The notes under the pieces: model-generated
Told to the model about the DNA's origin: nothing
Databases searched by the model: none
What the model saw: only the letters and a program-made list of their open reading frames with translations
Program-made: the position numbers and the translations under genes
NCBI GenBank assembly: GCA_037447605.1
Contig: CM074810.1
Coordinates: 3,894,313-3,958,312, forward strand
Length of the DNA stretch: 64,000 nt
Source: Zygnema circumcarinatum SAG 698-1b
Lineage: Eukaryota > Plantae > Zygnematophyceae
Reading direction: 5' to 3'
Shown: positions 6,536 to 50,191 of the stretch, in pieces
Numbering within the stretch: position 1 is the stretch's first letter
Layout of the letters: the number at the start of each line of letters is the position of its first letter

Positions 6536-9500
6536 TCACAAGAAAGTTGCCGAATAATTTTCCCTCTCGCCTCTCCCTCCCGGTGTCCTCGTACCCTCTC
6601 CTATCGTCCCGCCTCCTCCTTCCTTCCTATGCCGCCCCTCTCTTCGCCGCCTCTGACGATTACTCTTCTCATTTGAGCCGCTTTCTCTATCGGACCTGCG
6701 AACTCGACCAGACCTCCCGCTCCTCTGCTTGCCTGCAGCTCCATATTGCCCCCCCGAGCCCTCCCCTGCCCCCCCCCCCCCATTCCGCTCTGCCCCCCCC
6801 TCTCCATCGCCGACAAAAGCAGGGTTTTCTCCCGCAGGAAACCCTTCGGCATCATCACGTCGTCGCTCAACCACTGCCTCCTCTTCCTCCCCCTCCTCCA
6901 CCTCCCTCCGCTTTGCCAGCTTCCCGCCGCTACGCCCTGCACTCCCCCAAGAAGAGGTAGCCTCCTTCAGTCTGCTCCCCAACGACCCCTCTCGCGCCTT
7001 GTCCCCGCCGCCATCCCTCCCACCGCGCCCTCTTGCTGCAGGGAGGTAGAAAGGGTCGTGCTTCGCCCTGTGTTCGGCAAGCAGCGCAGAGGCAGAAAGA
7101 GCAGCGGAAGCACTGTTCTCCTCCTCCTCCTCCTCCTCCTCCTCCTTCTTCTTCTTCTTCTTCTTCTTCAGCAGCTCTCCACCGTCTCCCACCTCCCCCT
7201 CTGTGCTGCTCCATGGCTCGTTGGCAGCCCCACTCCCCCCCTCTCGTCTTGGGCGGCCAATTCTCTGCAGCTCTTCCAAAGCGCCCTCTAGATGAAGGCC
7301 CTCCGGGACGGGCACCCGCTGCTGGGCTCCTGCTTGAAGCGGTCTCAGCTCTTTTGAGAAGACTTGCCGCAGAGCCAATGCAATGGATGGCACTTTCTCT
7401 CTCTCGGCCACTACCTCCATCAGAGCGAGCACGTTGCAGACTCGTTCCTGAGCCTCCATATGCCCACTTTCTGCTAACCCTTGGACATGATTACCGACAA
7501 GCTTGGCCATGGCTTCTAGACTCCCTCTGTCTGCATGGGTCACTGCCGGCCCATTATCCTGCAGAACTTTTTGGGGATGTCGATACTCACAACCGGAGCT
7601 GCCGCTTGTGCCCACTTCTTGCTGATCTACAACATCACCATGTCTCCCAACCTCTTCCGAGAAAACTGAACCCTTTGCGGAACCTTCGTCCCTACTTCCC
7701 CTGCTTCCACTTTCACTACTGACCACTACCTTCGAAGTAGCCACGGCCGTAATGAACACCTTCAAAACTGCTTGCACATACATGGCCTGCACAGACGGCC
7801 CAAGGAGCTTCACCTTCGGCTGCAGCAGCGCTTCGAGGGCCGCCATGGAGTCTTCTACGTGTGCCGCATATTCCCCTACCACCCACGCAGCTGCTCCGAG
7901 GGGGAGGTCCATGGCGGAATGCCCCCCCCTCCCCACCAGCAGGGGACCCTCCTGCAGCAGCCGCAGAGCCGTACGGACAGCGGCCGCTCTCACTGTTGCC
8001 ACTCTCACGGGGAGGTCAACGAGCTGCCTCGCGACCTCCCGGCCATGGCTGCTTCCCGGCACGCACGCCAAGTGGACGAGCACATCGAGATACCATCCGA
8101 AGTCGCTCACTCGCTCGTAGCGGCCATGGCTGCACATGGAGAGGACAGCCTTCACGAGCTCATCTGTGAAAGGGCTGCTTCCGGCCTGCATGTGCTGCTG
8201 GAGGACAGTGACAGTAGGGACGAGGTTTTCCGGAGAAATCATCTCCAATACCAAATGCAAAGCGCAGCGCTGAATGCCCTGATCTTTGTCATCTAGACAA
8301 GAGAGGATGGAGCCCTTGTGTTCAGATATTGCAGCAGGATGCGTTTCCACAAGAGTCAACATGGTCCTGAGGCTTAAGTAACGCAGGTTTGGGTCCATGT
8401 CATCCACGAGCTCCCCCAGTTTGAGAATGCAGTAAGCCATGCCTGCCTCATGCTGGGACATACTCTCTGTGACGCAGCGAATACACTCAAAGAGAAGGGA
8501 CTTTGCGGGAGTGTTCCGCATAATGTCGCAGAGGGGATCGCCCAATTTCTGCGCAAGGCGGGGCTCAAGAGGAGCCAAAGCTCGGAAAATCTTCACAAGC
8601 TTAATAAGCAGCCAGTTGTTGGAAGAGGTTGTTAGCAGGCGATAAAACTCAGGTGCGAGGTGGAGATAAGATTTCGGATCTCGCAGTGTGAGTTCGCAAA
8701 GCACAGTCACTGCAATCCGCACCACCCCATCGTCCTCATCCTCGAGCCGTTCAGTGAGTCGGCGGAAGACCATTCGCAGCCCATCTGGGTGTTGGCGGAC
8801 CATTCTTAAGAGAGCTAAAGCAGCTTTCCGCCGCATGTATGGGCGGCCGCTGTTCAGAGTGGTGAATACTTCAGGTGTTAACTCGCGTGCCAAATCGGGA
8901 GTGGCAATGCAAGCAAGGCAGTTTAAGGCTAATCCGGCTTCGTACATGACAGGGCTGCCCAAATCTTTCCGCAACAAATTGGGAAGGAGAAGGAGTACTT
9001 CAGTTTCGTTGTTGAAGCTCTGACATGCAGCCAGATAGCCAATTTGCTTATTGCTGAAGATGGGTGTGCTCATCGCTTCCACAGTGGCAAAAGCGGCCCA
9101 AGTCATGTCTGCTCCTTGCAGCATGTGCAGATATGTCAGCTTCTGAAGAGCGACTATCTTGCAATGCAGGTCCATTGACTTCATCTCCCTTCTCACATCA
9201 GCAAGCGCCTGCGCCAAGTACTGTTGTTCACCAATGACCTGCAAAAGCCGGCTATTAGTGAAGAGTTGACAAAGCTTGTGGCCAATGCGAGGGTGCATTG
9301 AAGGGGGTGTGAAAGGCAAGCATGAAAGGGAAGGCGAAGTCGAAGGATTGAAGTCGATTGTGATAAACATTCGATCGCGCCTACGATAAGGTTGCGGTGA
9401 CAATCGAGTTGAAGGTTGTCATGCTGTGATGGAAGTTAAGGTGAAGGTAGGGAGAAGGTTCAAGGTTTCAAGAAAATCTCCGAAAGTTGTGATGAAGATG

Positions 9501-32475: not shown

Positions 32476-32560
32476 GTCTGTCTATCTGTCTATCTGTCTG
32501 TCTATCTGTCTGTCTGCCTGTCTGTCTGTCTGTCTGTCTATCTGTCTGTCTGTCTGTCTG
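32476..32560. repeat. (CTGT/CTAT)n microsatellite
   Basis: gtctgtctatctgtc... read directly. Confidence 0.9.
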
Positions 32561-32599: not shown

Positions 32600-35442
32600 T
32601 CAGAGAGCGAGCGTGGATCGCAGCATGAGTGCGTGGTAGGAAGACTTCCCGCTTGCAGCCATCACTATTCCCGGCTGCAAGCTGAGGCCCCTTCCGCAAC
32701 GCAGCCGCACAAACCCCTCCATCTGCAAGGGTGGCGAGGCGCCCGAGTGGCTCCCTGCATATCCTTGTGAGAACGCTTCAGGCAGTCCGGAGCCCAGACT
32801 GAGCCCCCAGCCCACTGCCCCTCGCCCCTTGGTGGGTGTATGGGCGAGCGAGAGCGCCCACAGCATGCGGTGCCGCTCGTCCTCCGCGAGCCAGTCCGCC
32901 TGGTCCGCCTGCGCCCACGCGGCCAGGGTGGTGCTGGGACCCAGCCCCAGGGCGCCGGAGACGGATAGCGACTGCAGGGCCATTCCGATAGAAGGGCGTG
33001 GAGGCTCCCACAGCGCAGACTCGCTTAGAGGGGGGCTCGCGTTGGTGGCTGCTGGCCTGCTCCCCTTACTTTCACCTAGGAACTGCTTTGGCCGCCACTG
33101 CAGCTTCGGCAGAACCAGAGGACCCATTTCACTCCAGTGCAGCCCCCCGCTGGAGGGCGCGGGCGGGGCCGGCCACATGCGGTTCAGCACGGAGAAGGAG
33201 AGCAGCAGGCGATCGTGCGGCTGCAGGGCGATCTGGGCCAGAGTGGCTGCACAGAGCCCGCTGTCGTCGGAATCGGGCAGAATGCGCGGGAGCGGTTGAA
33301 CTGACGCGCCCCAACCACTGAGGAACTGAGCGCATGTGAGAGTGGCGATGCTGCCTTTCAGAGAAACGCCAACTGCTGATCCCTTGGCATTGCCGTGAAG
33401 GGGCGCTCCTTCGCTAGCAAAGCGTGTCAGTGCCCGCCCCTGATACAAAAAGGAAAAGCATCAATCAGACCGAGCAAGGATGCCACCTTTTCAAAACCCC
33501 CTGCCCAAGATCATCTACTCCGATGGAAGGTACACAGGTATTGAGAACCTTATAGCAGTCAGGTTTCCTATAAATCGTACCAGCTACATCTCCCTCCCCC
33601 ACCCCCCATCCTTTTCCTCCTCCCCACCATTTCCTTCATTATGACGGATGTTTTAGTCAGCATTACCCCCACTGACGTTGAAGTAACAAGAAAAAATTGT
33701 ATAGAACGCTGCCTAGAATGGGAATATGGCGACAATATAATATATATATTATATTATATATATAATATTCGTTCTTTCTGAGCGAAGAGTAGAGCACCTG
33801 TAGAGGATTAAGTGTTTCCGCCATGTCCCAACCATGCGCCCCCAAGGGCGCAAACCGTAGTAGCAGCCCCGGCTGAATGTGCGCTGTGTAGAGCACCTTA
33901 TGCAGGGTGATCGGGCCTCCAAGCATGATGGGACTGGTGGCTTCACCCAACCCTGCCGTGCATTCGGTCAACAGCACATCAGCTTCGCGGCATGGGGTTT
34001 CAAACCGGAACTTCACTCCCAAACCGGACCTCATGCCTGCTCTCTCCAGAAGAGTTCGCGCCTCCTGGCTCTGCTCTTCTTCCGCAGGAAGGAATGCAGC
34101 GCCGGCATTCACCTCCCCTGTAAGGCGTGTCCGCACTCCGCCCCCTTCTGAGGCTGCAGACGGCCCTGAACCCAGGCGCCTCAGCCCTGTATGAAGTTCC
34201 AATTTATCGACACGTTCCCGCACATTCAGCAAATCTGAGAATGCCTCTCGAACGAGGCGCCGAAGAGCGCTCACCTGAACCCCCCAAGAAACAGGGAATT
34301 TCTTAAGACTTGTTCTCATTAATTTTGCCTCATATGCTCATTTACATGCATTGGCAAGTTCCCAGGACACTGGGAACGTACAAATGCTGTGAAAGAGTAT
34401 GCTTGACCAGCAATAATAAACGGAGTAATAAGGCCGGCCAAATCAGAATTCAACCCTTTCAGTGCATGCATCAAACACATTTGCCAAGCCACAGCTCAGA
34501 TCATACAGAGAGTGACTCCTCTCTTCCCACCTCTGAACGGCGCGCGAACGCCTGCTCATTCGGGCGACGGTCGAGCAACTGTATGGCGAGGAGAGCCACC
34601 TCGTCAATAAGATTTTGGCGTTCCAACTGTGCGTCCACTTCCTTTTTCTTCTCAGGTGTCATAGCAGCAGTGTTCCCACGCCGCTGCCCTGTAATGGCGT
34701 ACATCATCCCTGCCAAAGCGCCAAGAACGTGGTCCACCGGCAGCTTCCTGGGATCGTCACCTGCGTCATTTCTGCTTGACCCGAACTCCATTTCTCGTTC
34801 GAATGTAGAAGAAGGAGACGCGTCACCCTCGACTTCCTCCTCATTCTTCCCCCCTTCAAGACTCCTTGCCTTCATGACTGACCTCCCCTTCGGCGACATT
34901 GACGCGCTGCCGGGAAAGTCGACAGTCACAGTCGGTACACTTTCGTCCGGTGCTTCCCCTTCCTTTTCATTTTCACCCTTTGCTATCAGCGCCTTCTCTC
35001 TCCCTCCGCCCTCCTGCCCTCCACCCCCTCCGCTGCTGCCTCCCCAATCATTTCCACCGTCGCCAGACCCGCCGCCATTTTTCCCATCTCCACCAGTAGC
35101 TCCGCCTCCCTCTCCTTTCCCTCCTCCCGCTGAATCTCCATCGAGACTGCTCCCGGATTTGGAAGGAGTCGATTTTGAGGTTTTCGACCCCTTTGAGGGC
35201 GGCGAGCCCCCTTTACGGTTCGCCCGAGGAGCTCTCGGTCTGCGGCTGCCGCCTTCAGCGAGATCTGCTGTCACCAAGGCGCGGTGGCGAGAGGCGGCAC
35301 TGCCTCGGCGGCCATGGATGCAAGGGAGCTGGAGCTTGAAACCATCGTTAGGGTTAGGGCTATTGGAGTTTGGATTGTGAACAGCCTGCTGCAGCGGAAG
35401 GGACGAGAGCCATCGCTGCTGAAATGAAGAATACAGCGCCAT
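32600..35442 (-). CDS. Putative plastid outer-envelope beta-barrel protein related to cyanobacterial SLH-OprB porins
   Basis: Exons 35442-34531, 34274-33798, 33439-32600, all phase 0. Ser/Arg-rich transit-peptide-like N-terminus, Gly-rich linker, coiled coil ALRRLVREAFSDLLNVRERVDKLE, TRLTGEV, C-terminal LQMEGFVRLRCGRGLSLQPGIVM...ALMLRSTLAL*. The gene model is solid; the family assignment is by recalled similarity. Confidence 0.8.
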
Positions 35443-35710: not shown

Positions 35711-38700
35711 ATGGCCATGGCGGCCATGGCGGCTGCGGCGGCGCTCGGGGGTGGGAGCGGGGGCGGGGGCACTGCGCTGGAGGAGGCGACGCCGCGCGGG
35801 GGGCGGGACTACGTCTTCATCATCAACCCCGCCAGTGCGCCCGCCTGCCATGGCGCCCACTCTTTTATGGCTCTTCGGGTCATGAACTAGGCATTTCTCC
35901 ATAGCTGTGTGTCAAAAGCTAGCCGTATTTACATTGACGCATACTGTAATTATTTATCAATGCAATGTATTGTCTCTTACCTTAGAAACTTTGTTGTTGG
36001 TTTGTGCTGAGCAATGAGCCACGTTGTAAAGCTCGTTTTTTTTTTGTTTTACTGGAGAGGTTGATAGCGAAGGATGGCATGTTTACACGCTGTATTTTTC
36101 TGTTCAATATTTTTAGATTCTTTTGTCGACATATTTTCACATCTGGCATAAATCAATGCACGCTTCCGGATATTGAAAAAGTTGTCCTACTTCGCATCTG
36201 CGTATGTTGCTGTTGCGGTTATACCTCCCCCCGCACTCTCTCCCTCTCTCTCGTTCTCACTCGTTCTCTCTCCCTCGACAGGTGCGAATGGTCGGGCTGC
36301 ACGCCAGTGGAAAAAGATTGTTCCATTGCTGAAGAAGGCTCTGGGAAACGACTGCAATGTGAGATACTGTTATTTCCCCCTCGCCGATTGCTCGCTCTGG
36401 TTCGTCGTTGTTGTTGTTGTTGACCTTAAAAATCCTCTCTTTACATCCCTGTTTTCGTGATCTTTAGGGATTCCTACTGATGGGAAACCACCGTCAGTGT
36501 TTTGCTTTGGCTAAATTATCAACAGTGATCTTGAGTGCATTTGGAAAATAGAAAACCTGTGAAGCATACATTATATTCAAGACGCACCGTCAGCTTTCGG
36601 AGATGCGCAGGTGGTGGAGCAGTTCACTCGGCACGAAAAGGATGCAACGGAAATGGCGCGGAAGGTGAGCTTCGGTAATCGCACAATATGTGAACCCTAG
36701 CAAGTACCAAATGTTAGGATTGGGGAGTTCTCCAAACCAATTTTTGTTGTGAGCACTTTTGCAGAGATTCTGTTTCGATTTAGTGCTAAATACCTGCCAC
36801 TCTTACGAATGCTTGTTTGCACCCATAAGCATCTGAATTCACGCTCATGTTTTGTCAGTTAGAGATTTTTTAGCAATTGTTGAATTCTCCTGCTAGCAGC
36901 TATTGGTGTGGTTTTTACTTGTTGATGGGAAGCCTGCCTCATATTGCAGGCGGTGATGGACCGAGCGCATGCAGTTGTGGCGGTTGGAGGAGACGGGACC
37001 CTAAATCAGGTGCACTGAAGAGCTTGATTGAAGAAAAACATTTCCTGCTTTGTACCTTGAATTTGAGTTTGTATGAAGTTAGCATTGCCTTTGCTAGAGA
37101 GAGTGGCTTGCATGAGCATTGTAAGCCAGCTACACCATGAGAATCTAACGTTCTGGATTAGTTTGGGTTTCCTGCAGATTGTAAACGGCTTTTTTTTGGA
37201 TGGCGAGCCTGTGGCGCCTTCTGGGGGCGAAGGAGATGGTGTACGCACGGCCTGTGGGGTGAGCTTCTAGGAGGCCCGCCAAAAAAAAAAAAAAAAAAAA
37301 AAAAAATGGAGAATTTCCCAGTTCTGCTCTCTCATCCTCTTCGGTAATGCTTTCAAACATTGCCATGCAGTTATGCTGCGATTGTTTGCCTGTTATTACG
37401 TCTGAACGGTAGTGCTATGCAAAGTCTGATAAGGCAGTCCAGTGTCAGGCTACTGTGCGAGAGTGCATTCAGTATGCTAACATTCCCTTTTTTCTGGGGG
37501 CATTGTGGCAGCTCATTCCATTGGGGACCGGCTGCGACTTTCCTCGAACCTTCGGCTGGTGAGTACATTTGTTTGTTAGAGTCTGCGGTTTCAAAATCTT
37601 TTGGAATTTGGAAGCTAAAGGTGTTTTTGACTCTGGCAGAGAACAAACTTTGGCATGGATGTTTACTAACCTGAGTATGTTTATAGTCCAGTTTTCTATT
37701 TCTGTGGATAGAACCTTATGTTACTTTGCACTCCCAACCCCAGCTGTTTGCGCATGCCTCACTGGAAGATTGTGATGTCCCTTCCATGTTTTGCTCTGGA
37801 AATCAGCGGTGGCTTGTGAACTCTGATGTTGCCCATTCTTCAGGTGCTGGCCAGCATGCCAACAATGAGCAATGAGCAGAACATCCTCCGACGTGGACTG
37901 CCATGGTGTGCAGGAAGAGTAACGACATCAAGGGCGCTGTGGAACGCATCAGCAGAGGTCTGCTGCCTCACTCGAAAGCCAAACTCTCACGTTCGTGTTA
38001 CTGTAATCTGAGAATGCTGACGATTATTGCTGACTTTTGACAGCATCATAGGCCTAACCTGTGGTGTATCGATTTTACAAAGGTTATGGGAACTGCCGCA
38101 GGAACGGGGGGTGAGCAACCGTTCTTGTCGAGGTTTACAGTTCTTGAGCCGTTTTGGATGAACAGGTTGTATCCCTCTCTGGTCATGGAACTGCAGGAAA
38201 GACGAAGCGACTGGACGTGGGAAGGGCTCGTTGCGCTGGCCTGAATGCGGCTCGCATGTTTGTCAACGTACTGGACATGCACCTGTGAGCATCACACCAC
38301 CCAGACATAGGTTCCCTTACTTTTTCCTTCTAGCGTGGGGCGATAGGCATTGGGATGTGTGGTAGGAGACCAAGACCGGGCTTCTTCATGACAAGGGGAG
38401 CCGAATGTATGTCTACATAATTGCACGTCTCTGTAGTTACGAGTGGAGGACGATCTTTTGGAGTTTGCAGGAGTGCGCGCACTGGCCAGGTGGCCAGTAA
38501 GTTCAAATTCCTTGGTCCTCTGTGCTACGTCGTGGGCGCGGTGTTGGCGTTCCTGCAGCACGTCAACCGTGACGTCATTCTAAGGGTGCGCTGCCTGCTG
38601 CTCTGTTAGCGTTGGTTGCGGGCGAGCCCTCCGCCATGGCTGCCGTTGTGACAGCTCTTGTGGCTGCGCTGGGCTGCAGGTGGATGGGGAGCAGGGGGTC

Positions 38701-40461: not shown

Positions 40462-40690
40462 CGAAGGTCACCGATGTGAGGCACATCGCGAGCAGGGAGC
40501 GGCGGAAGTCCACCAACACGATCACCAACAACCGCAGCACGCCGAAGAAGCGTAGAAGCGAGGCAACGCTGAAGGGCGACGGAAATGCGCTGTCGATAAA
40601 AGGTAGCCAAGATCGCCGGAGGAGGGCGATTCCTTCTACTGCTTTAGTTTTCACTCCGTTTAGTTTCATGGACCTCCTTTGGTTCAATGC

Positions 40691-40960
40691 AGTCAGTCAG
40701 TCAATCAGCCAGTCAATCAATCAGTCAGTCAATCAGTAAGCCAGTCAGTCAGTCAGTCTGGTCCAGCTCGCTCAGTACCGCGTTGTGGTTCCTTTCTGCT
40801 CGCGCCCTCTCCCTACTCCCTAGCACCCACCGACCCCTGCTGCTGCTACTGCCGCCGCCGCCACCGCCGCCGCCAGTCTGTCTGTCTGTCTGTCTGTCTA
40901 TTTGTTTTTCTGTCTGTCCATCGGTCGGTCTGTCTGTCCGTCCGTCCGTTCGTCCGTCCG
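40691..40960. repeat. Microsatellite cluster: (CAGT/CAAT)n, (CTGT)n, (CCGT)n
   Basis: Read directly, upstream of the TIGR01589 gene. Confidence 0.85.
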
Positions 40961-41084
40961 AGCGAGAGGGCTGTCTGCGCCCGCCCGCCCTCGCCGGCCG
41001 CCGCGTGGCGCCGTACAGCGCAGTCGACCGTACGAGGGCGTTATCTGCGTGGGATATTTGCACGTACGGAGTGTGCCGTATATA

Positions 41085-41101
41085 TGTACGGTTTCGTACA
41101 G
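41085..41101 (+). promoter_or_regulatory. TGTACGGTTTCGTACAG double-GTAC motif
   Basis: Ends 101 nt before ATG 41202; several other CGTAC cores lie at 41010-41070. Confidence 0.55.
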
Positions 41102-41201
41102 TCGGGCGGTCCCTCCCTCTCCTAGTCGCCCTCGCGCTCGCCCGAGGGAAGGAAGGAGGCTTCTCAGCACGCGAGCTCGCACGTGCGCAGATCCCCCGGC
41201 C

Positions 41202-43925
41202 ATGGCGCAGGCACACAAGGCGGGCCCGCAGGTCGCACTGCCGCAGGGGAAAGCGGGCACCTCTTCGGGCGTGCCGGAGGGGCCGGAGAAAGGGAGGAAT
41301 GGGACTTCTCCCACGCCTCCCCGGCAGGTGAGCACCTTGGAGGAACCCTAAACACTTAGACAAGATATTACAAACCGAAGCTCTTCTTGCTGGAATCACA
41401 TCAGCAATGCCATAATTTCAGCATCTCTGTGGTATCCTTCTTCCGCATGCGTTCAGGGAGTTGTGAGGAGCTTCAGGCCGCTACGGGAAACGAAAAATCT
41501 CTTAATTTTTTTTTGAAAATGAATTGCTATCACTGGTTGCCTTCCATCACGCCGTGTGCATCCACATCTGCGTGCGCTAGAAGGTTATGTATCACTATCG
41601 CATGAGCTAGGCTACCGTTGCTCGAACGGTAGCCTTGGAAACGTTCAAAGCATGGGTAAACCAAGATATGAATTCTCAATGCTGGAGAAGACTTTCGCAA
41701 CAGGCTGCTCAGGCTGTCTCTTACTGCAAGCGGCGTGGGGGAGGGCATGCGTGGACTGCGTGGATGTGTGCGTCAGGCGGCAAGCTCCGGCGCGGGGTCA
41801 AGCGGGGGGCAACGGTCGGGGTCCATGGGCGCATCTCAGGGCCTCTCGGCAGCGCCAACCGGGAAGCAATCTTCAGCTGCGATGTCGCCAGCTAACGCCG
41901 CATCACCGCCATCAACGACTGCAGGGAGCCCTCCGGCGGGAGGCACAGGGGCGGCTGGAGCCTCGAGTCCGACAGCCTCAGCTCCGGCCAGCAGCGCAGC
42001 AGCTCCTGGAGAGAGTCGGAAGATTTCGTGTGAAGATATACAATTGGTAGGTTCCGAAACGCTCCTATGGAAAGCATAGAGCTTCCGTAATATGTCGCAG
42101 CTGGACTAGGTCACCGGTATTTGTAGTTTATCCAACTGTCTCCATTTTCGGTTGTTTCTTTTTTTAGGTTTTTTATCTGATATGCGCAAGGTTGTAATCG
42201 GGTGGGAAAAGACAAGCGCCTGTATTTTGTGAAACTTGAGCGCTCTGATGCATTGTGTACAGTGGCAATAAGCCCGGCCGAATGATTGAGGTTTCATAAT
42301 CCTCCCTATAGTGCTAACGTCACTTCGGAGGACGTTGACCACACTCTCCTTTTGTCCTCTGAAGCATGGCATCTAAATCTAAAAAAAATTGGTGAAACGA
42401 AAAGGACTATCCCAGATATTTACGCAGAGTTCGTGTAGTGCTGCTTTCAGCCGCTAATGTTGTTGCGGAGAGGAGGGGAGTGCATCTGTCAACAGGTGCA
42501 AAATCTGATTGAGCGGTGTCTCCAGCTGTACATGAACCAGCGTGAGGTTATGACCACACTGCAGCAGCAGGCACGCATAGAGCCCGGCTTCACAGGCCTT
42601 GGTAGGCTGTTTTCTTCCCAATCGTGTGGCTTGTTTAAGGTGAACTCTTGTTTAAGATAGGCCCGGGTCTTGGAGCTTAAGTTTGTGCAACGGTATCTCG
42701 TTTGGGTCATTTTTGCTGTTGCCTTTTGCCTTCTTTGTCTTTGTTCTCTGGAAGTGCTTTGCCTTCTGCTAGTGATGTATGCTCGCCGTTTTGCATTGCA
42801 GTTTGGCAAAAGCTGGAGGAGCAAAACCCCGAATTCTTCAGAGCATACTACACACGCTTAAAAGTGAAGGAACAGATGCTGCAGTTCAACCACTTACTGG
42901 AACAGCATTCCCAGCTCTTGCAGAAGCTCCGCATGGCTCCACCTCCGGGCGGAGGGTCGCAGAAGATGATGGCGCCGGCCCCCGGCCTGCCCTCTGCCAT
43001 GCCTCCACCCGTCCATGGGGCCCCGCTCGGCTACCCCATCCACCGCCCTGCAGGACTCGGCTGCCCGCCCATGCCCGCCCATGGGGGCATGGGCCGTCAC
43101 GCGGGGGGCATGACCATGCCTCCCCCACATGGGCCCATGCCATCTCCATATGCGCCGCATGGAGGAGGTAGAACACGGCCGTAAGTACACTTCACAGCTT
43201 CACATTTCATGCGAAATTGAGTTTGGAAGGAGTATGAGATGTACATTGTAGTACATGGAGCTATTCTGGGTTTGTGAATCATACAATTGGGATGGAGGCA
43301 AGTAGGAAATGAGTTCACGAAGGTAGAGCAAGGAGCTTAGTGATCTGGAAACTACGCCTCGGGAACTTAATCCACGGTTTTCCTGCAATTCTCCAAGTAA
43401 CTTCCCTCCTTATGATGTTGCTCGGCATCGCAGTGGGCTTATGGACATGCCTGCGATCGGGGTGCCTTCCACTGGGCTTCCTGCCCACTCTCTTCCGCCG
43501 CACTCCCACCCCTCCGCCAACGTCCATGGCAGCCCATCAGAGAACGGCCACCACATGGGCGGAGAAGCCGCGGGCATGGACGGCGGCGCAGACGAGGCGG
43601 GCAGCAGGGGGGGCGGCGGAGGGTCGGGCGGGGAGCTGGGGGGGGGCGGCAGCGCCTTCCCCTTTGCGAATACGGAGCTCGGGCTCGGACTGGGCCTGGG
43701 CCTGCCCTTGGCGCTGGAGGGGCCCCCCTTTGGCGGGGGAGGGGGGGGCGCCATGGGGGGCCTCGGCCATGAGGCGGACGTGGGCCTCCCCCCGGCAGCT
43801 TCCCGGGAGAGTCTGGGCGGGCTCGGGCAGCTTCCACGCAACTTCAGTCTGTCTGATCTCGCGGCGGAGTTTCCGTCAGGGATTGCCTCTGATGGTGGGC
43901 CGCATGCCATTCTCATTGACCTTGT

Positions 43926-49045: not shown

Positions 49046-50191
49046 ATGAGGATGGGAACGAGCAAACGGAGGTGTAAAGTCAACGGTTTGCAACTCGTTC
49101 TCGTTTTTTCAATAGCCCTGATCTATTTCCGAATATACCTGGCCATCTTGTCACCCAAGCATTCATCTGGAGAATGCAGAGAAGCAGAGGCAGAGTTAAG
49201 AGCCCTGCAAAGCTCCCTTGTCGGGTGCTCTGCAGAGCTATTTCAGCGAGGGAAGCTTTCTGCAACAGTGGCAGCAGCGGCTGATCCAAACGAGAGAGTT
49301 GACGATGGGGCTTTCACCGTGGCCGACTGGAGGGCGTCTTTGGGGGAGTGCACGGCATCGGATGCTGATTTGAAGCAGTTCGTGAAGTATGATTCACACT
49401 CTGAGTGCCCGGATGACTGGCCGACGGTAGAAGCACTGATCTGGAAAGAGAATTGTCAAAGCCTGCCGCGGCGGAAGTGCTTTGCTGCTATGCCTGAGAT
49501 ATACCCCGAACCGTACCCTTTCCCTGACGCATTATGGAGAACTCCGAGCAAAGATAGTGTCCGATGGGACCATTATGAGTGCAAAGGTTTTGACTGTCTT
49601 GCCTCCTATGATGGCGGCGTCTTCCAGCTAGAGAAGGAGAGAGCGAGATGGCATGTCAAGAGGCAAGTGAACAATGAACTTGTCCTTGATGTCTCAGCTG
49701 TTCTGGCCCTTAAAAAGGGGAGCATTAGAGTCGGGCTTGATATTGGTGGGCGCATTGGATGCTTTGCTGCACAGATGGCTGTGTATAATGTGACTATTAT
49801 CACAACAAGTGCGAATGAAGGTGTTCCTTTCTTAGAGACCTTGGCTTTGAGGGGCCTCATTGGTCTTCAGCTGTCTCCAAAAGGGAGGCTTCCTTTTTTT
49901 GACAACAGCATGGACATTGTCCACAACAAGAGAAGCATAAATTCACTGTCGCCCGATGAATTTGAGTCGGTGCTTCTGGACTGGGACAGAGTCCTTAGGC
50001 CTGGAGGGGTTCTCTGGATAGAGGAGTTTCGGCAGCCAAAGGACATAGTCGAAGATTATTTGAGCAAGCTACACTTGTTGCAATACAATGTACATCAATG
50101 GATCATGGAGTTTCTAAAGGAGAAGAGGCATGTAAGTCAGCTCACCGTGGTCCTTGAGAAACCTCTTCGGGAGGAGTTGGAGTCGATTTGA
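49046..50191 (+). CDS. Intronless type II membrane SAM-dependent methyltransferase (plant Golgi-type, At1g29790-like)
   Basis: 381-aa ORF with N-terminal TM (LQLVLVFSIALIYFRIYLAIL), CPDDW, CQSLPRRKC, IRVGLDIGGRIGCFAAQM, RLPFFDNSMDIVH, DWDRVLRPGGVLWI. Confidence 0.9.
   Translation: MRMGTSKRRCKVNGLQLVLVFSIALIYFRIYLAILSPKHSSGECREAEAELRALQSSLVGCSAELFQRGKLSATVAAAADPNERVDDGAFTVADWRASLGECTASDADLKQFVKYDSHSECPDDWPTVEALIWKENCQSLPRRKCFAAMPEIYPEPYPFPDALWRTPSKDSVRWDHYECKGFDCLASYDGGVFQLEKERARWHVKRQVNNELVLDVSAVLALKKGSIRVGLDIGGRIGCFAAQMAVYNVTIITTSANEGVPFLETLALRGLIGLQLSPKGRLPFFDNSMDIVHNKRSINSLSPDEFESVLLDWDRVLRPGGVLWIEEFRQPKDIVEDYLSKLHLLQYNVHQWIMEFLKEKRHVSQLTVVLEKPLREELESI

Follow-up and report, generated by a model that had tools for sequence, protein, structure and literature searches.

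An orthologue of the chloroplast envelope protein UP1 in the alga Zygnema circumcarinatum, from a streptophyte family with the coiled coil and barrel of cyanobacterial SomA/SomB-type porins

By examining a 64,000-nucleotide stretch of the genome of Zygnema circumcarinatum SAG 698-1b (contig CM074810.1, positions 3,894,313 to 3,958,312 of the forward strand, the whole of which is hereafter called the window), we found that a three-exon gene on its minus strand, at 32600-35442, encodes a 742-amino-acid orthologue of the Arabidopsis chloroplast envelope protein UP1 (At1g11320), as judged from sequence orthology over both the helix and the barrel. On the evidence of profile comparisons, the family to which the two proteins belong descends from the major outer-membrane porins of Cyanobacteria, i.e. 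SomA, SomB and Slr1841. The coiled-coil linker of these porins and, according to structure prediction, a barrel with all 16 strands and the conserved loop that joins the fifth to the sixth are kept, while the wall-anchoring SLH domain is lost beyond detection, so that an SLH ancestry can no longer be demonstrated from the sequences. Taken as a whole, i.e. with the addition that the protein would be an outer-envelope channel whose long N-terminal extension would act as a Toc75-like signal, we regard this reading as likely.

Parts of this picture were already available for the Arabidopsis protein. Imai et al. (2011) listed At1g11320 as a possible new beta-barrel, with cyanobacterial SomB found by HHomp at 100%, a match that favours a chloroplast location (PMC3045335). 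The name UP1 comes from Bouchnak et al. (2019), who reported an 8-fold (8.0) envelope enrichment and UP1-GFP (green fluorescent protein fusion) in the chloroplast envelope (PMC6601204), and UP1 later served as a marker of the envelope, with UP1-FAST labeling the chloroplast envelope (PMC13263057). In a 2016 TCDB survey neither OprB nor the cyanobacterial porin family has a plant entry (PMC4827864), and our literature search found no functional study of the UP1 family. The gain over the literature is therefore moderate, since for At1g11320 both the link to SomB and the location in the envelope are published and the window gene is a new algal member. What is new is the reach of the family, which extends to the base of Streptophyta (Mesostigma) and is not confined to flowering plants, and a long N-terminal extension in algae, Selaginella and ferns, the layout of which resembles the bipartite signal of Toc75.

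The extent of the family was assessed by searching with exon 3 alone, as a single sequence, against 1.84 billion cluster representatives. This matched 37 proteins, one of which was a spurious match to an immunoglobulin domain; with that exception, all members that could be traced to an organism belong to Streptophyta. They comprise algae and bryophytes (Mesostigma, Spirogloea, Mesotaenium, several Closterium, Riccia and Physcomitrium) as well as vascular plants (Selaginella, Adiantum, Ceratopteris, Ginkgo, Cryptomeria, Welwitschia and hundreds of angiosperms). Chlorophyte, red-algal and glaucophyte members were absent from the traceable exon 3 matches, in a single-sequence search that could easily miss diverged copies. 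In a maximum-likelihood tree the family forms a single tree in which the window protein is nested among zygnematophyte sequences, adjoining P0001 (84% identity) within a well-supported group of Closterium and Mesotaenium. The Arabidopsis member, P0222, is NP_172599 (Q9SXB7), i.e. At1g11320, and it falls together with its land-plant orthologues and the window protein in one family in all searches and in the tree, the likeness covering the coiled-coil helix and the whole barrel. The short forms of seed plants, of ~420 amino acids, are 25-38% identical to the window protein over ~420 residues, and Arabidopsis UP1 differs from the latter in lacking its presequence, its glycine-rich tract and its helical pre-coil region. 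Most seed-plant members are named 'uncharacterized', just as a preliminary description of the locus, made from the DNA letters alone, had stated for the land-plant relatives.

A few entries are oversized, e.g. P0024 (1331 amino acids), in which the family member is fused with reverse-transcriptase RNase H domains, P0230 (1205), which carries the name of a lectin receptor kinase, and P0176 (1139) and P0242 (1293), with long extensions being seen in Riccia and Selaginella. These four are probably merged gene models rather than true fusions. A barrel class named BUL16 (barrel of unknown localisation, 16 strands) and described in a 2026 preprint on the COB database (bioRxiv 10.64898/2026.07.15.738633) may be the same as the UP1 family, when compared by description only. 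Both are 16-stranded plant barrels distinct from the named OEP classes and have a variable N-terminus of low confidence, and BUL16 is represented by the Aquilegia coerulea protein PIA58738.1, from a genus that also has a UP1 family member (P0089). BUL16 was, however, reported as restricted to Magnoliopsida and left without an assigned location, whereas the UP1 family spans Streptophyta and its Arabidopsis member resides in the envelope.

The relation to Cyanobacteria emerges most clearly when families rather than single proteins are compared. Cyanobacterial porins were fetched by scanning bacterial genomes with the back-translated motif PTDWA[FY]QAL, the matching loci being almost all labeled as Cyanobacteria. 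From these, 95 complete open reading frames (ORFs) were extracted and 28 of them aligned (alignment A2), with SLH and OprB confirmed by Pfam in all four that were checked; the plant side was represented by an alignment of 39 family members (A1). Comparison of A1 with A2 by hhalign gave a probability of 99.6% and an E-value of 4.1e-24 over 400 aligned columns, running from slightly upstream of the coiled coil to the final residue of both families, and an alignment of long forms only, headed by the spliced protein of the window, reached 1.4e-23 against A2. Identity between the plant family and the cyanobacterial porins over the aligned columns is 17-19%. The A2 consensus contains ...PTDWAFQAL...ACLDRV...KEDLxTLQRLQEEFxAELAxLRGRVDxLEART... 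and, in the barrel part, ...TTKLxGE...HxEAFYxxxLxDNISITPG...RTTFxF, and the cyanobacterial motifs given in the preliminary description were accurate. The blocks formed by the coil, T.L.GEV,.EAF......PG and the last strand were aligned exactly as proposed there. The proposal of four collinear blocks nevertheless holds only in part: the coil, the first strand and the C-terminal strands match significantly, but PVDHVLGAL is placed on PTDWAFQAL by forced extension only, at the level of chance. In Mesostigma the linker, KEDDLKTLRRLQREVFQEL, is nearly intact when set against the cyanobacterial KEDLxTLQRLQEEFxAEL, and the coil of the window protein, ALRRLVREAFSDLLNVRERVDKLE, aligns with the cyanobacterial linker at high per-column confidence.

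Individual members were also scored with a hidden Markov model (HMM) of A2, the E-values being scaled to a library of Z = 1.84e9. The highest scores include 62.7 bits (2.7e-12) for P0031 of Welwitschia and 61.3 for P0007, with Mesostigma at 49.3 and Ginkgo at 49.0. Among 18,950 NCBIfam models, NF033921 por_somb ('iron uptake porin') was the sole credible match, found in all seven full-length members scanned at 1.7e-12 to 0.035; the other match was a weak 23-residue signal-peptide motif. To window exon 2 the por_somb match was faint (0.35) and covered the coiled-coil part, and across members the scores were 9-47 bits (46.8 for the best) as against a cut-off of 100. Pfam OprB gave no match in the three exon pieces (E up to 10) or in 14 homologues, and the blindness of this general model points specifically to the cyanobacterial branch. 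An OprB-type barrel above the cut-off of either PF04966 or NF033921 was thus not found. Searches of the PDB with exons 2 and 3 by phmmer returned no match, and the family profile returned only a spurious kinetochore coiled coil there (E 1.1), so that the relation is visible only to profile-profile comparison, the purpose-built cyanobacterial HMM and por_somb. These three methods uphold the claim of homology to SomA/SomB/Slr1841-type porins, from the coil through the whole barrel. As for the HMMER or HHpred search suggested earlier, Pfam OprB and SLH came out empty, but profile comparison did find OprB-type homology, with no SLH.

As by-products of these searches, a tblastn of a cyanobacterial porin against plasmids found cyanobacterial porins and SLH-only matches in Thermus, Allomeiothermus and Sporomusa. 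Several of the cyanobacterial loci (L007, L074, L092 and L097) contain tandem arrays of two or three SLH-OprB porin genes in a single orientation, which suggests that the bacterial family readily duplicates locally.

The fold was predicted with AlphaFold2 from alignment A1, the first row being P0001:220-743. The model (mean pLDDT, i.e. predicted local distance difference test, of 74.3; 214 residues at 90 or above) consists of two low-confidence helices ahead of the coil, one 37-residue helix corresponding to the coiled-coil segment, and 16 beta-strands, most of them above 90, with short helices at 92-97 in the loop between strands 5 and 6. Foldseek against the PDB placed OmpM1 of Veillonella parvula on top (E 8e-9, TM-score 0.65 on the target), followed by OmpC, OmpF and OmpU, with Pseudomonas OprB (4GEY) at rank 20; the 50 matches listed are all porins or related channels, with no Omp85, TamA or FhaC among them. 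The barrel anticipated in the preliminary description is accordingly predicted as a porin barrel of 16 strands, preceded by a long helix. Like this model, OmpM1 (PDB 8BYT/8BYM/8BYS) combines a 16-stranded porin barrel with a helical stalk ahead of it, and both OmpM1 and SlpA of Deinococcus radiodurans (7ZGX) share, by sequence, an SLH domain and coiled coil with the cyanobacterial porins. They differ in that neither matches the plant family at the sequence level and in that their function relies on an intact, wall-binding SLH domain.

Set beside the cyanobacterial porins (TCDB 1.B.23), the window protein has the same order of parts after the SLH domain: the L.RLQ.E.F..L...R.R.D.LE coil, the T.L.GE first strand, a predicted 16-stranded barrel, the NP...G[LA][TS].F loop, the.EAF......PG motif and a hydrophobic C-terminal strand. 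Unlike them, it is nuclear-encoded and spliced, carries a presequence and a glycine-rich tract in place of a Sec signal peptide, has no detectable SLH domain, ends in Leu instead of Phe, and remains far below the por_somb cut-off. The coiled-coil stalk helix (amino acids ~297-335, FARRSEVSALRRLVREAFSDLLNVRERVDKLELHT; 34182..34545, minus strand, interrupted by intron 1) lies directly before the barrel and bears the LQRLQEEF..EL..LRGRVD.LE signature. This coil motif is kept in all 39 aligned members, with R93, L94, E97 and F99 invariant. The OprB-type barrel predicted at amino acids ~352-742 (32603..34133, minus strand) is interrupted by intron 2, which falls inside the loop between strands 5 and 6 (amino acids ~452-485, GWDMAETLNPLQ|GRALTRFASEGAPLH; 33374..33833, minus strand, with short helices in the model). 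This loop belongs to the most strongly conserved parts of the 39-member alignment (consensus ...NxxQxxGLTxFSSxGPPL, in which T251 hardly varies), hhalign aligns it with cyanobacterial NPY....GALSxF...NPIY, and, judging from classical porins, it probably represents loop L3, which constricts the pore. The last strand and C-terminus (YHALMLRSTLAL; 32603..32638, minus strand) correspond to a family consensus of PALMLRSSWSL, compared with G..RTTFxF in Cyanobacteria. The aromatic end of bacterial porins (Phe) is missing, in that the window protein ends ...LMLRSTLAL and the family ...LRSSWSL, with few members ending in F, whereas 93 out of the 95 motif-bearing cyanobacterial ORFs end in F or Y, the two exceptions being short non-porin ORFs.

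The gene itself is well defined. Splicing and translation of 32600-35442 reproduced the three-exon minus-strand gene with exactly the coordinates given earlier, its exons lying at 35442-34531, 34274-33798 and 33439-32600 with GT-AG junctions and its stop codon at 32600-32602. Intron 1 (34275-34530; GAG|gtggga...ttcag|GTG) and intron 2 (33440-33797; CAG|gtgctc...atcag|GGG) are both canonical and of phase 0. An intron-less Logan contig of 2845 nucleotides (L121, run SRR8128905) from a related alga encodes P0001 (743 amino acids, 77-84% identical to the window protein) and aligns with the window in three blocks, 34669-34529, 34276-33798 and 33429-32599. These are contiguous in the contig and terminate at the predicted exon borders, and the splice model is thereby independently supported: this is a real, spliced nuclear gene of a streptophyte alga. 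In the spliced product, PVDHVLGAL is located at amino acids 235-243, LLDRRPNEQAFARRSEVSALRRLVREAFSDLLNVRERVDKLELHT at 289-333 across the junction of exons 1 and 2, TRLTGEV at 353-359, and the C-terminal LQMEGFVRLRCGRGLSLQPGIVM...LMLRSTLAL at 702-742, all as the preliminary description would have them.

Upstream of the coil, the window protein is longer than its seed-plant relatives by ~300 residues (742 amino acids compared with ~420). Such an extension, of 180-500 residues, occurs in the long forms (algae, Selaginella and ferns) and is missing in seed plants. It is made up of an acid-poor, hydroxylated presequence starting with MA, a glycine-rich tract and the helical pre-coil region, and the glycine-rich linker noted earlier is indeed present, behind an acid-poor N-terminus. 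In the window protein the presequence (amino acids ~1-60; 35263..35442, minus strand) is Ser/Thr-rich with a single acidic residue among the first 50, from which we infer a resemblance to a transit peptide. Its character is most pronounced in the long forms of algae and Selaginella, less clear in ferns, and absent from the short forms of seed plants. The glycine-rich tract (amino acids ~100-150; 34993..35145, minus strand) has 24 glycines in the 40 residues from position 106, with GGGGG as the longest run. It recurs in every long form from Mesostigma to ferns, at 10-26 glycines in 40 residues and in runs of at most nine, and in no seed-plant member. Toc75 is the best-known outer-envelope barrel with a cleavable N-terminal signal. 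There, according to PMC5147994, a transit peptide is followed by polyglycine, and the long forms share this layout of a transit-peptide-like segment and then a glycine-rich stretch in what would likewise be an outer-envelope barrel. The barrel of Toc75 is, however, of the Omp85 type and unrelated to the porin, the window protein has no POTRA domain, and the likeness of the signals is one of composition only.

The third part of the extension, i.e. the pre-coil helical region (amino acids 233-300, PVDHVLGAL...AAMTPEK...EVALLAIQLLDRR; 34543..34746, minus strand), sits immediately upstream of the coil and thus at the position of the SLH domain in cyanobacterial porins. The preliminary description saw in it a degenerate SLH domain, which, if still functional, might anchor the outer envelope of algal and moss plastids to their peptidoglycan. 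Besides the position, this is favored by the greedy mode of hhalign, which pairs LPVDHV--LGALAGMMYAITG with SDVqPTDWAfQALqsLVERYG and RGNTAAMT with RGNRAmT in collinear order, by a DW[LM].G[LA] motif at the SLH spot in many algal and fern forms, and by a few members that fall within the 1-5% tail of their own shuffles with an SLH-only HMM. The forced extension that lays PVDHV..LGAL on PTDWAFQAL has, however, near-zero column confidence, and every further test was at the level of chance. Pfam SLH was found neither in the window exon pieces (E up to 10) nor in the homologues (E up to 1). When the region upstream of the coil in 16 long forms was compared with the SLH region of A2, profile against profile, the E-value was 0.79 and the probability 0.05%, with 70 out of 100 column shuffles scoring as high; the best local match there,.DW..L..L with TDWAFQALQSLVE, is equaled by shuffled columns. 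The SLH-only HMM gave ~0 bits on 18 N-terminal segments, none of which survived correction for 18 tests. Run against the PDB, the cyanobacterial profile picks up OmpM1 and SlpA by their SLH domains at 1e-21 to 1e-17, whereas the plant family profile finds no SLH protein there, and the invariant cyanobacterial SLH residues (P62 T63 D64 W65, G82 P84, R96 E98) have no conserved plant counterparts, the window protein having H for W. An N-terminal SLH domain (PF00395; PTDW...G.P...R.E) is, in other words, not recognizable. Furthermore, the annotated Physcomitrium and Riccia proteins are without the region, the Physcomitrium models being visibly incomplete at the C-terminus, and it is in moss that plastid peptidoglycan is best documented. 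With the SLH domain undetectable, the suggested peptidoglycan tether is speculative, and we consider a working SLH domain quite improbable. The earlier proposal of an endosymbiont-derived outer-envelope channel with an SLH domain is therefore retained for its cyanobacterial porin homology and its barrel, but not for the SLH domain.

Two other explanations concern the barrel rather than the N-terminus. It could serve not as a solute channel but as a structural or lipid-related component of the envelope, or as an Omp85-like insertase, a thought to which database names lend some color: in UniProt and NCBI, P0222, P0098, P0121, P0157, P0061, P0185 and P0210, among them proteins of Arabidopsis, Salix, Cardamine and Cinnamomum, are called 'GDSL esterase/lipase' or 'Bacterial surface antigen (D15) domain-containing protein', and the 'GDSL lipase' label was taken literally in a study of cold acclimation, where At1g11320 counts as a lipase (bioRxiv 10.1101/813725). 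Moreover, Omp85 barrels likewise have 16 strands, and the best fold match, OmpM1, has a role in outer-membrane attachment besides that of a porin, according to its PDB title. Lipase_GDSL was, however, matched in none of 14 members scanned by Pfam (E up to 1 or 10), none of which bears the lipase name, and the lipase-named Arabidopsis protein, scanned against NCBIfam only, gave one weak match, to por_somb. The lipase name thus looks like an annotation error. An Omp85/D15 identity was rejected on the grounds that Bac_surface_Ag (PF01103) matched none of the 14 members and that no Omp85 structure occurs among the Foldseek matches listed. OEP40, which we take to be At3g57990, was discarded too, being a different gene with 12 predicted strands. 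The porin and channel character of all those Foldseek matches, the porin nature of the homologous bacterial family, and the conservation, in plants and Cyanobacteria alike, of the loop that joins strands 5 and 6, which fits a maintained pore, all argue for a channel and make a non-channel role unlikely. Even less probable, and in our estimate very unlikely, is that the similarity reflects barrel convergence or a later horizontal transfer from another bacterium into an early streptophyte. The occurrence of the family in Streptophyta only, among the traceable exon 3 matches, is a patchiness unexpected for a gene of the primary endosymbiont, and SLH/coiled-coil/barrel architectures are found also in Negativicutes and Deinococcus-Thermus. 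Convergence is nonetheless excluded by the end-to-end alignment of 400 columns (E 4e-24), and another donor is argued against by the nearly intact cyanobacterial linker in Mesostigma, by the cyanobacterial por_somb as the sole credible curated-model match, and by the marginal match (E 0.087) that Pseudomonas OprB gives even with the cyanobacterial profile, while the patchiness itself may reflect diverged chlorophyte and red-algal copies that a single-sequence search could easily miss.

We therefore return to the reading of a UP1 orthologue of cyanobacterial porin descent, the working of which may be pictured as follows. The barrel would sit in the plastid outer envelope, as for Arabidopsis UP1, with the N-terminal helix reaching into the intermembrane space, which corresponds to the periplasm, and probably assembling there into a trimeric stalk like that of OmpM1 and SlpA. 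The barrel would act as a channel for small solutes or inorganic ions, like the cyanobacterial relatives labeled 'iron uptake porin' by NCBI. In the long forms, the extension would most likely act as a Toc75-like bipartite targeting signal, so that the N-terminal part would reach the intermembrane space ahead of barrel insertion. Several points weigh against this reading. The window protein is among the weakest scorers with the A2 HMM (23.3 bits; the E-value is 2.4 at Z = 1.84e9, or ~1e-9 if the comparison is taken as one planned test), and its assignment runs via its family, which by the cut-offs of the curated models is itself a distant relative of the porins and not a member. A cyanobacterial as opposed to another bacterial donor is probable rather than certain, the terminal residue of the window protein is Leu where bacterial porins have Phe, and the structural model is that of P0001, 77-84% identical, and not of the window's own protein. 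The envelope location in the alga is extrapolated from Arabidopsis, whose protein has no N-terminal extension, channel activity of the plant family is carried over from the bacterial relatives, and trimerization and the role of L3 are analogies.

A bolder version of the favored reading may also be considered, in which the long form is ancestral, a wall-tethering porin that enters the intermembrane space by a Toc75-like signal, with polyglycine as the 'stop' after the transit peptide, and whose pre-coil module still binds residual peptidoglycan or an inner-envelope partner, and in which seed plants later discarded both module and signal, a scenario we find unlikely. If it were true, the long-form protein would be a tether from the outer to the inner envelope as well as a pore.

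The surroundings of the gene fit a streptophyte nuclear genome, in that the window holds an apparently intron-less ORF of 955 amino acids with a full Adaptin_N domain (6536-9403, minus strand, E 2e-96) and an ORF with a plant-type Methyltransf_29 domain (49046-50191, plus strand), marking it as eukaryotic nuclear DNA. A short ORF on the opposite strand (35711-35890, plus strand; MAMAAMAAAA...GRDYVFIINPAS) starts 270 nucleotides upstream of the porin ATG and may represent exon 1 of a neighbor that is transcribed divergently from a shared promoter region. A frame of 356 amino acids antisense to exon 1 (34310-35380, plus strand) is Pro/Ser-rich as the mirror of the glycine-rich coding strand (GGN read as NCC), and was dismissed as almost certainly no gene. 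About 40 nucleotides past the stop codon, probably in the 3' untranslated region, lies a (GTCT)n microsatellite of ~21 copies (32476-32560). ORF translations near 40687-41331 show the same kind of repeat (SVCLSVCL...), and the tetranucleotide is thus scattered through the window. Intron 2 contains an AT-only, low-complexity stretch (33735-33769, ATATAATATATATAAT-like, ~2 copies) in a gene otherwise of 58% G+C.

Lastly, very few proteins of the plastid outer envelope have a recognized origin in the outer membrane of Cyanobacteria, the examples generally given being Omp85 proteins (Toc75, OEP80) and LptD-like lipid transporters, and we know of no clear bacterial ancestor for the solute channels OEP21, OEP24 and OEP37. 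In this setting, the profile comparisons indicate that the most abundant type of cyanobacterial porin survived, at least in the streptophyte line, in the form of UP1 ('unknown protein 1'), a protein in use as an envelope marker and yet mislabeled in databases as a lipase or an Omp85 protein. The annotation of the bacterial relatives as iron-uptake porins suggests metal or ion homeostasis as an angle from which to approach UP1, and the Toc75-like extension of the algal and fern forms suggests their import route as a question for envelope biologists.

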